From NCBI GenBank assembly GCA_003427395.1, contig BFEA01000030.1:712001-776000 (forward strand): 64,000 bases of DNA, in the 5' to 3' direction. Under the pieces are notes generated by a model. The model was not told where the DNA came from. It ran no database searches and saw nothing but the letters and a program-made list of their open reading frames with translations. The position numbers and the translations under genes are program-made. Position 1 is the stretch's first letter. The number at the start of each line of letters is the position of its first letter. Below are positions 38,801 through 41,800 of the stretch, piece after piece. This stretch comes from Chara braunii. Lineage: Eukaryota; Plantae; Charophyceae.

Positions 38801-41800
38801 AATCATGTGAGCCAGCCACATTCACTACGTTCTACACATGCCTCCTTGCACCATCTTCAACAACACTTTGCCATTGTCCCTGTGGACAAAACATGACACA
38901 CTTTGGCAATTTGCTTCAAGAATTGGTATCTGTTTCATCTCCTTATCCATTGGACAGTCCCACTTGTACTCGTCCTCAAGAGTCCGTTGCTGATGTCCTT
39001 GACCACCATGTAGTGTGGAATCACCATTGGGGTTACACCCACACTGATACCCTACCTTACCTTTACAATTTACTCAAAGCTCACAAGTCTCCTCCAGCTC
39101 TTCGCAGCATTCTTGGAGTCACATCACAAAATAACAGTGCTGTTTCCCCGCGTGCTCGCCCTCGTCCAACAATTCGCACCATTCATGAAGGGCCTCCTCA
39201 CAAACCCTTGGCTAGCACAACGACTACTTTGTCATATCTCAACGCTGCTTTGCAAGTAGTGATCTCTACTCTTCGCGAGAAAGACACTGCGCTCTATCAA
39301 CAGGTTGGTGTTCGACGGTGCTGGATCGTTTAGAGTGCCGATGAAGTGCCAATGAAGTGCCGATTGACCTGAAAAACAATGCATCGTCTCTTCGTGGCCT
39401 CTCTCGTCTCTGTTGGTTTTACCACAATGTACACCAACCTCCCTCATGACCGCATTCTGAATAATGTGGCAAAAACTGTTGATGAAGCTCAGGCTTATGC
39501 CGTTCGGCAAGCTCGCACGCATTCACGCTGCGTTGCCCTCAATATGGTTATTTGAGCCCCAATGGACAATTGATTCAGGCCTGGATACCCTTTCTGTTTC
39601 TCAGATTCTCCAACGTCTTCGCTTTGTTGTACAAAACACTTTTCTAAACACGAGAGATGGCACGCTTCGGACGCAAATTATTGGTATTCCAATGGGAACG
39701 AATGCTGGCCCAGAAATTTCTCATCTTTGTCTGTGCTTGGCATGAAGCACGCTTTGTTGATGACATTCGTCAACATGATCTTCAAGCCGCTCAACAATAT
39801 GCCTTTACCTATCGCCTCATTGATGATGTTCTTTCATGGGGACAATTACCTCCTCCACCAGAGCACTATGGGCTTGAGTGGAAGGAGACTACAGCTACAA
39901 ATGACTCCTGTACTTTGTTAGGTATGCATCTACGGGTCCGTTCCGAAGGCTCGCTTCGCATGAGCGTCTTTGATAAAGCGGCTGCTTGGGACTTCCCTGT
40001 CATTCGTTATCCAAGTGCGNCCTCCAACATCCCTTCCCATCAACTGGCTGGTGTCTTCGCTGGGCAATTGACCAGATTTGAACAAATCTGTAACAATGGG
40101 CAGGACTTCCGAATTGCGGCAGCAACACTTACTCGTCGTATGCTTTCGCGTGGGCATTCCCCACCAACCGTTGCTAAGGGGTGGACCTGCTACATGTGCT
40201 CCGCCAACGTCGCTATTGTACGCATATGACGCGTCTCTCAGTGGTTTCGACGCATGCTGCGATGGTCCTTGTATCATCCAATTTCTTCTTCGCCCCGGCG
40301 ATGCTCCCGGCGTTAGATATTCACGACTCACCTATACAACACGATGTGGTCCCTGCCCAGAGTACACTCCCGACTCCAGGTACAGTCCCTACTCAGGATG
40401 CAGCTGCTGCCCAGAGTACACTCCCGACTCCAGGTACAGTTCCTACTCAGGATGCAGCCGCTGCCCAGTGTACACTCCCGACTCCAGGTACAGTCCCTAC
40501 TCAGGATGAAGCCCTTAACGTTGAGGGATTGGAACATGATCAGCCTGGATTGCAGTTGACCCCACAAGGCGTAGACCACATGGGGGATCTGCAAATGGCT
40601 GACCAGCATTGTTCGGATGAACCACAATTTTGTGCTCTGCCACGCGCAGACCACATCGGTGATCTGCAAATGGCTGACCAGCAAACAACCCAACACAGTT
40701 CGGGCTTGCAACACCATCTGGGTGATCTGCAAATTGTTGGCCAGCATCCAACAAACCAGCTTGAGAACCTCACCAATCTCTGTGGTCTGACAGCAACTAA
40801 TATCTGTCTTCACATTCTCCACCGCCTGTTTTATACGCCATCAGACTTTCTTGCAATCGCCCTTCAGCTTGATGCTGAATTTCCCCGACGACAGCCAGAG
40901 GATTGTAGTTATACCAGCGAAGGAGGCTTTACCATTGCTGTCCTACAAGTAGCAATGCGGGACCGTCAACTTGACCTACGCAGTGCTCGAGCCGGTGAGT
41001 GGTTTAATCCTCCATCCCACATCTCTGCCTGCATTTTGCACAGCCCTGGCCATTACATGGCCATTGTACATGCCGCTGACCACTGGGAGCTGTGGGACAA
41101 CAGCACCATGGTCCATGCCATGATTGATGTCAGTGATTTCTTACAAAATGATGCTGTTTTCTTGCCACAAGAAACCGTCCGCAATCTCTTTTATGTCGAA
41201 GATCATTCCTCTGGCCCCGTGCTGCAGCAAGACAACGTACCAACACTCTGCGACCTTCTCCTTTGCACAGCCACAAACACTGTTACACTCGGCTTTAGCC
41301 GCCATCGTCTCTGTCACAATCACTACAATCACTACTATGACATGGTTTCTGCATCCATGTGTGCAGAGGACTGTCCCACCGTTCCTGACTGCAGGCACCC
41401 TCCGCATCCGGACACCATATGTCCATTTTGTGGCCATGGGCGCTATACTGAATGCATGCTCTTTTGTGGTGACCGTTCTTCTTTCATTTTGGCCTGCAAT
41501 CGACTTGCCGTTTGTCGTGAGTGTATGGTGGGCATGCTCAATGCCACCCATCGTGGCAATTGTTGCACTGAGAATGCTCAGGTAGGTCTTCCATGTGTTC
41601 ATCCACCTCATCCTTACAATGTATGTCCTCTCTGTCGTCAAGGACAGACTCATTCTTGAGCCTTTTCTTATCCTCTTTTGCCTTCATCTTCACTCCACAC
41701 TCCATACTTTCCCTTTATCGTTCCTTGTTTGTTTGCTCTCCGTCTCTCCTCCCTGTGTTTATCCCCTCCTCCTTCACTCTGCCTCTTTCTCACAGCGTAC

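Follow-up and report, generated by a model that had tools for sequence, protein, structure and literature searches.

A dead Chlamys-type Penelope-like element copy of Chara braunii with a predicted Josephin-fold protease domain and a RING-like Cys/His tail

The analysed DNA, a 64,000-nt stretch from Chara braunii (the window, whose coordinates are used throughout), contains a decayed, 5ʹ-truncated copy of a Penelope-like element of the Chlamys type, that is, the type with an N-terminal endonuclease (Table 1). Directly behind its reverse transcriptase (RT) lies an open reading frame (ORF) of 492 amino acids (aa), in which a repeat-rich linker is followed by a cysteine protease domain predicted to have the Josephin fold and by a Cys/His-rich tail. 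Taking all the evidence together, we consider it highly probable that this ORF is the C-terminal part of a dead, 5ʹ-truncated Chlamys-1_cBra-type retrotransposon, with the Josephin domain probably being a deubiquitinase. Four public sequencing runs from the same organism supplied the reads with which the limits of the element were set. The summed DNA word depth climbed from about 8 to thousands at about 37364–37527, ranged from thousands to more than 100,000 over the element with a rise toward the 3ʹ end, and dropped past about 41956–42100, giving sharp edges near 37466 and 42040. Some DNA contigs joined 37465 straight to 42048, indicating that the flanking sequence also occurs without the insertion. 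An alignment of four copies likewise put the 3ʹ end at about 42040, up to which the copies L001, L003 and L006 were alignable and beyond which they diverged.

Table 1. Features of the Penelope-like element copy in the Chara braunii window
Feature	Position	Strand	Basis
Decayed Penelope-like element copy	37466..42040	+	DNA word depth edges; 3ʹ divergence of the L001, L003 and L006 copies
Remnant of the C-terminal half of a GIY-YIG endonuclease, R...E...N motifs	37602..37676	+	Motif inspection of ORF 37341..38033
CxC zinc motif (D-C-E-C-R-K-A-F)	38486..38509	+	Motif; named as a Naiad/Chlamys feature in PMC8557442
Reverse transcriptase (DK motif, RT1-7, thumb)	38867..40229	+	Motifs; four reading frames, order 2, 1, 2, 0
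Repeat-rich linker (54 nt x3 at 40353-40513 and three D/H-H-x-G-D-L-Q units)	40230..40750	+	Tandem Repeats Finder (TRF)
Josephin-like papain-fold cysteine protease domain (predicted)	40751..41215	+	Pfam PF02099, AlphaFold2, Foldseek, VIA, ESM Atlas
Candidate RING-like zinc module 1 (C-x4-C ... C-x2-H-x2-C-x2-H ... C-P-x-C)	41249..41440	+	13-unit alignment, AlphaFold2, structural matches
Candidate RING-like zinc module 2 (C3HC4-like, Arg after last Cys)	41453..41644	+	Unit alignment; model residues 73-140 match MEX-3C and MDM2 RINGs
3ʹ untranslated tail	41660..42040	+	79-88% identity in L001, L002, L003 and L006, then divergence

The 5ʹ truncation has removed the GIY-YIG core; Pfam gave no GIY-YIG match in the window copy, and the sole trace upstream of the RT was the R/E/N-type remnant. 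The RT was recognized by the motif V-P-V-D-K-T (38867–38893), by Y-R-L-I-D-D at 39810 and by further motifs at 39070, 39418, 39680 and 39915. A direct Pfam scan of the RT pieces gave no match, and PDB sequence searches with them returned nothing useful. The counterpart of the thumb at another Chara locus, L002, reached a protein-language-model score of 0.96 to atlas clusters with PF26215, and a lower row (0.93) also carried RVT_1. A search with this L002 thumb piece as the query matched only two sequences, a chimeric gene model of Chara and a short ENA protein for which PF26215 is listed.

The window copy is a dead relic without a function of its own, because its endonuclease is truncated, the reading frame of its endonuclease/RT part shifts at least five times and meets a stop of its own, and one zinc ligand has been lost from each unit of the tail. 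Over 37466–40180 every frame contains 25–29 stops, and the coding sequence passes through five frame changes (0, 2, 1, 2, 0, 2). The stop at 38894–38896 is private to the window copy, with a C at 38895 in effectively all reads. Read variants would close this stop and three of the frame changes; the substitution at the stop and the insertion after 37952 occur in nearly all reads, while the other two indels reach a majority in RNA runs only, and the closing variants include the extra C after 40200 described below. Upstream of that C, the reads show an extra C after 37952 in most of the DNA depth, an extra T after 38949 in all of the contig depth of RNA run X7 and in a minority in the other runs, and a missing base at 39736 in the majority of RNA reads, though in only about 55% in run X22. 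Compared with the related protein P0001 and the L001 and L003 copies, the third ligand of zinc unit 1 has changed from Cys to Phe and ligand H4 of zinc unit 2 from His to Leu. As decay is thus also found in the tail, the long open frame is a lucky survivor and not a functional gene.

A preliminary description of this DNA, made from the sequence alone, had pointed out the long frame, and its account of the frame held in every detail. The frame 40181–41659 (+) is open over 492 aa. The reported 18-aa repeat was recovered by TRF as a 54-nt unit present three times with 95% matches, D/H-H-x-G-D-L-Q occurs three times (40574, 40649, 40712), and each of the five quoted protein motifs is present in the frame between 40775 and 41104. 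The proposed triad codons are TGT at 40781 (Cys201), CAT at 41051 (His291, followed by Tyr292) and GAC at 41096 (Asp306). The His-to-Asp spacing is 15 residues (His291–Asp306), which we take to be the same as that between H119 and N134 of ataxin-3.

The frame was also correctly placed directly after the RT thumb. The RT frame ends with a stop at 40227–40229, so that the RT and Josephin frames overlap at 40181–40229, with an offset of one base. A C-run after 40200 bears an extra C in 82 of the 129 X22 RNA reads and in about 18% of the DNA depth. This additional C, lying within the 49-nt overlap, joins the two frames exactly, which supports one continuous ancestral RT-Josephin ORF, as the preliminary description had supposed. 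Intact members most likely have one long ORF encoding a GIY-YIG endonuclease, a telomerase-like RT, a repeat-rich linker, a Josephin protease and two RING-like modules. The linker itself is variable. Its repeat number differs between copies, and the expressed copies differ in the length of a (TC)n run after 40233 and diverge over 40290–40337. In the L002 copy, which represents a sister subfamily, a different tandem repeat (19 aa, three times; locus positions 8001–8200) lies between the RT and the Josephin domain, indicating that the linker is a hot spot of repeat turnover between conserved flanking domains.

To the domain behind the linker, the Pfam Josephin profile PF02099 (curated cut-off 26 bits) aligned at residues 199–302 of the window ORF with E 5e-4 and 20.4 bits, below the cut-off. 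Among the relatives, the scores were 25.2 (P0002), 21.6 (P0005), 17.4 (P0003) and 29.2 bits (P0006), with only P0006 exceeding 26. An exhaustive HMMER search with residues 191–492 against 1.84 billion representatives yielded seven homologues only, namely the Chara braunii gene models GBG63275, GBG83788, GBG77352 and GBG91891 and three short ENA/Logan contigs. A word-indexed protein search with the 492-aa ORF gave no match, and the same kind of search with a 10-sequence profile found the family's own members only. Two of the relatives deserve a separate remark. P0006 (locus L004), a Logan SRR10607546 contig of 1291 nt, is a divergent relative with 28% identity by HMMER; in its ORF, which is open to the 5ʹ end of the contig, a stretch rich in proline and a C2H2-like motif accompany a Josephin domain above the Pfam cut-off and a single RING-like unit. 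The Josephin/RING-like module may exist outside Chara braunii. P0004 is GBG91891.1, a Chara braunii gene model of 1706 aa that ends in 55 residues derived from part of the Josephin domain of the element. It is an annotation chimera from an unmasked element fragment, and its remainder reads like a helical-repeat protein.

Since the PDB sequence searches retrieved no Josephin, a fold comparison was needed. Residues 191–492 were modelled with AlphaFold2 from a 7-row alignment, and the predicted local distance difference test score (pLDDT) was 60–84 over model residues 9–150 and below 50 beyond. In the Foldseek comparison with the PDB, all seven matches at E ≤ 0.001 were Josephins; the best was the ATXN3L-ubiquitin complex 3o65 (E 4e-6), and three ataxin-3 solution structures and JOSD2 (6pgv) were also among them. 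VIA-align ranked JOSD2 first (6pgv_A, Z 14.3, root-mean-square deviation (rmsd) 2.9 over 130 residues) and ATXN3L second (3o65_A, Z 12.2). Next came the bacterial PaJOS, PcJOS and BpJOS (Z 9.5–10.1), interleaved with the viral tegument-like deubiquitinase 8add (Z 9.8), and the Josephins were followed by other papain-fold families. The four nearest ESM Atlas sets were PF02099 clusters, the top two being streptophyte. The Josephin call of the preliminary description was thus borne out by the model and its structural matches, and we accept, on sequence and model, that the C-terminal domain is a predicted Josephin-fold cysteine protease.

The candidate active site was followed through an alignment of ten family members with 25–88% identity to the window copy. 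Among the sequences covering each site, the Cys was kept in all five, and the His with a following aromatic residue (HY, HW or HF) in all eight; the third triad position was D, N or S across the relatives. Down to 25% identity, the relatives therefore conserve the proposed triad. In bacterial Josephins, Cys/His/Asp has been proven to form the active site, and an aromatic gatekeeper after the catalytic His is typical of conventional deubiquitinases (10.1101/2024.07.24.604956).

The module is not restricted to the window copy. At the L001 locus of Chara, the Josephin part, the Cys/His part and the 3ʹ tail were found together. L002 carries RT pieces of 60–72% identity, followed by Josephin and Cys/His parts of about 41–53%, and two more fragments; L003 holds one copy of 87% and one of 29–32%. 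The recurring order of RT, linker, Josephin part, Cys/His part and 3ʹ tail indicates a family trait and not a one-off insertion, and copies with 25–88% protein identity share the segment. The ratio of nonsynonymous to synonymous substitution rates (dN/dS) was estimated by the Nei-Gojobori method, the window copy being compared with those of L001 and L003. It was 0.23–0.24 in the Cys/His part (93–144 codons), 0.44–0.70 in the Josephin part (70–108 codons) and 0.45–1.65 in the linker (58–111 codons), with small counts throughout and noisy linker values. A fourth value for the Josephin part (0.82) was excluded, as the stretch runs into an insertion and is misaligned. Because dead copies have accumulated neutral changes, these values overestimate dN/dS in the active lineages. 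Judged by these ratios, which lie below 1 for both the Josephin and the Cys/His part, the Josephin-like domain is under purifying selection.

The family also appears in RNA. In run X22, the first mate lay on the minus strand about 7–10 times more than on the plus strand, which indicates sense-strand family RNA if the X22 library is of the usual stranded kind. Most X22 RNA reads were less than 95% identical to the window copy and hence derive from other copies.

The Cys/His tail was analysed with an alignment of 13 units from seven sources (about 60 columns). C1, C5, C21, H50, H53, P54, C58, C61 and G64 were invariant, C15, H18, C38 and C48 were kept in at least 90% of the units, and column 24 was C or H. 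The resulting pattern, C-x(2-4)-C-x(9)-C-x2-H-x2-C-x2-[C/H]-...-C-P-x-C, has the cross-brace order of a RING finger: ligands C1, C2, C5, C7 and C8 do not vary, at least 90% of the units have C3 and H4, and position 6 is C or H. Each unit also has four extra ligand-like Cys/His positions, including an H-P-x-H-P motif. No significant RING profile match was obtained; with the unit profile, the only PDB sequences retrieved were those of the arenavirus RING finger protein Z (E 0.1–6). All per-unit Pfam matches were sub-threshold and most were to RING families, the best being zf-P11 (E 0.019) and zf-RING_5 (E 0.071); a lower E-value, 0.004, belonged to CitX in a single unit only. For a model of the tail, AlphaFold2 was run on P0001:55-197, a segment with 82% identity to the window in which no ligand has been lost. 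The model (pLDDT 77.9, predicted template modelling score 0.67) shows a strand-strand-helix order twice. Foldseek found nothing below E 1 for it, and RING domains made up most rows. In VIA-align, all Z were at most 4; the RNF213 RING ranked best (Z 4.0, rmsd 2.5 over 53 of 54 residues), RING or U-box domains occupied about four fifths of the top 50 rows, and the second unit matched the MEX-3C and MDM2 RINGs. Furthermore, the Arg directly after the last Cys is kept in second-type units. In RING ubiquitin ligases (E3s), the residue after the last Cys is the "linchpin" position that contacts the ubiquitin-charged conjugating enzyme (E2~ubiquitin).

On this basis we think it fairly probable that the tail consists of two tandem RING-like modules. 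Neither the RING-like look of the tail nor the decay of the copy had been noticed in the preliminary description. With the RING E3 fingers of RNF213, TRAF3 and MEX-3C and with the arenavirus Z protein, the tail shares the cross-brace pattern, the strand-strand-helix order (as modelled) and, in second-type units, the Arg after the last Cys. It differs from them in its C1-C2 spacing, which is 2–4 instead of 2, and in the four additional Cys/His positions, which suggest a third zinc site.

Although the preliminary description knew of no such domain in a Penelope-like element, the design was published in 2021, together with the Dualen parallel (PMC8557442). Craig, Yushenova, Rodriguez and Arkhipova reported three Chlamys types in Chara braunii and noted, at the C-terminus of Chlamys-1_cBra, a motif weakly homologous to Josephin, together with an unknown Cys/His motif (PMC8557442). 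By the features given there, Chlamys has its endonuclease at the N-terminus, a CxC motif, a DK whose third residue is not conserved and usually no hammerhead ribozyme, with tandem repeats lengthening some families and a very high copy number in C. braunii (PMC8557442). The window element shares with Chlamys-1_cBra the host, the very high copy number, a putative endonuclease remnant before the RT, the CxC, DK rather than DKG, the absence of a hammerhead within the element, and a weak C-terminal Josephin motif followed by a conserved Cys/His motif. It differs in being dead and 5ʹ-truncated, against a consensus of about 1,800 aa; the comparison with Chlamys-1_cBra was made on the published description. 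Subfamilies of 25–88% protein identity exist, and the window copy may belong to a sister subfamily. The Josephin-tailed architecture is thus already known for this genome. What the present analysis adds is a fold-level confirmation of the Josephin domain, per-domain selection estimates, family sense RNA and, with moderate confidence, the RING-like reading of the "unknown" motif, a step further than the description of 2021.

Eukaryotic Josephins (ataxin-3, ATXN3L, JOSD1/2; PF02099) provide the best structural match, with Cys, His-aromatic and Asp(Asn) in the same order. The identity in the structural alignments, however, is about 18–23%, the element domain has no ubiquitin-interacting motifs, and it is embedded in a retrotransposon polyprotein with RING-like fingers next to it. 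Josephin-like cysteine proteases also occur in Dualen elements, for which "disrupting protein degradation" was suggested (PMC8557442). These non-long-terminal-repeat retrotransposons of green algae (Kojima and Fujiwara 2005, cited in PMC8557442) are likewise of the green lineage and carry the protease as an accessory; Dualen, however, is a long interspersed nuclear element with two endonucleases and RNase H, whereas the Chara element is Penelope-like with GIY-YIG.

As the Cys / His-aromatic / Asp(Asn) site is kept, the Josephin domain is most likely a deubiquitinase. Its catalytic activity and substrate, and any E3 function, are inferred. The Josephin domain would remove ubiquitin or a ubiquitin-like modifier in trans from conjugates, and this removal would shield the element's own protein or ribonucleoprotein (RNP) from ubiquitin-dependent degradation or restriction, with the RING-like pair supplying E2, ubiquitin or substrate contacts. 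More tentatively, the whole C-terminal extension might be a working ubiquitin-editing cassette, in which an active Josephin deubiquitinase and a tandem RING E3 rewrite ubiquitin marks carried by the RNP of the element or by restriction or chromatin factors of the host; we hold this to be possible, with the odds leaning against it.

Several points weigh against the overall interpretation. The Pfam Josephin score of the window copy lies under the curated cut-off, and neither the family profile nor phmmer found a Josephin match among PDB sequences. The triad was assigned from motif similarity and spacing, not from residue-level superposition, and the RT was identified from motifs and a protein-language-model match, with no Pfam match. 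The single ORF is drawn from the 2021 consensus and from reads that close the breaks, and no intact full-length copy was recovered; in addition, a second indel polymorphism, +TC after 40233 in most RNA reads, complicates the frame path of the expressed copies.

Other explanations of the module were also weighed. A papain-fold protease within a long polyprotein, adjoining a long, variable and probably disordered linker, could act mainly in cis and, like the papain-like proteases of RNA viruses, cut the polyprotein (e.g., in the linker) so that the RT is separated from the C-terminal module; the leader protease of foot-and-mouth disease virus and coronavirus PLP2, both of which process polyproteins and remove ubiquitin or ISG15, are among the related folds. 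Yet the Josephin deubiquitinases are the closest structures by a clear margin, and the linker, which is wholly different between subfamilies, showed no conserved Gly-Gly-like cleavage motif. Penelope-like elements are not known to require polyprotein processing, and we consider a mainly cis-acting protease improbable. A destructive ubiquitin C-terminal "clippase", as some bacterial Josephin relatives are, would fit the next-best structures, BpJOS and PcJOS (clippases) and PaJOS (Z as given above), in which Cys/His/Asp is found as here (10.1101/2024.07.24.604956). PaJOS itself is a clippase by its PDB entry title and a conventional deubiquitinase in the preprint (10.1101/2024.07.24.604956). Because the eukaryotic Josephins score higher and the aromatic gatekeeper of conventional deubiquitinases is kept here as HY, HW or HF (10.1101/2024.07.24.604956), we give this activity very little weight.

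The weakness of the RING matches (Z not above 4.0, Foldseek E never below 1, sequence E 0.019–0.1) and the four extra conserved Cys/His positions per unit, foreign to a classical RING, would suit a non-catalytic scaffold that binds ubiquitin or protein, with the tail as a zinc domain that binds nucleic acid or protein and has no part in ubiquitin ligation. However, a full triad and gatekeeper kept down to 25% identity would be unexpected for a pseudo-enzyme, and the eight RING ligands, the strand-strand-helix order and the Arg after the last Cys of second-type units fit an E2-binding RING, which makes such a scaffold unlikely. Finally, with one copy only in the window and pieces held by Chara gene models, the ORF might be thought a piece of a host gene, or a frame open by chance, that happens to lie beside a retroelement. 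This explanation is refuted by copy number and synteny and has next to no probability left: the summed DNA word depth reaches tens of thousands, chance would yield only about 7e-6 open frames of 492-codon length in the whole window, the same order and a conserved 3ʹ tail recur in L001, L002, L003 and L006, and the gene models are fragments or a chimera.

Around the element, several other observations were made. An Rfam search found no canonical hammerhead ribozyme within 37466–42040; the only one that it found in the window is a type III hammerhead at 34111–34165 (+) (52.9 bits, cut-off 48.5), 3.3 kb upstream of the element, which may belong to one of the Chara Chlamys types that bear hammerheads according to PMC8557442. 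A 43-nt look-alike of this hammerhead (91%) lies at 63269–63311, near the window end. Apart from a 133-nt fragment at 29723–29855, which is 78% identical to the 3ʹ tail (41765–41897) and the only other family trace, no second copy of the element was found in the window. The element flanks (37364–37465 and from 42048 onward) are repetitive, with a summed DNA depth in the thousands, and are not repeated within the window. A full-length U2 small nuclear RNA (159.6 bits) and three U6 small nuclear RNA matches (84.6, 54.6 and 51 bits) surround the element, at 42629–42828 (-), 42972–43079 (+), 31202–31302 (+) and 34927–35034 (+); the U2 and one U6 lie within about 1 kb of its 3ʹ end, and the weaker U6 copies may be pseudogenes or retrocopies.

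Accessory domains of the ubiquitin system are rare in retrotransposons, and their presence here hints at a manipulation of host ubiquitin like that by viruses and intracellular bacteria. The fold evidence and the RING-like reading make the activity of the Josephin domain and the role of the tail directly testable. If the ubiquitin-editing cassette were true, no Penelope-like element would have been shown to have a functional cassette of this kind before, and what was an "unknown C/H motif" in 2021 would be a new three-zinc variant of the RING finger.

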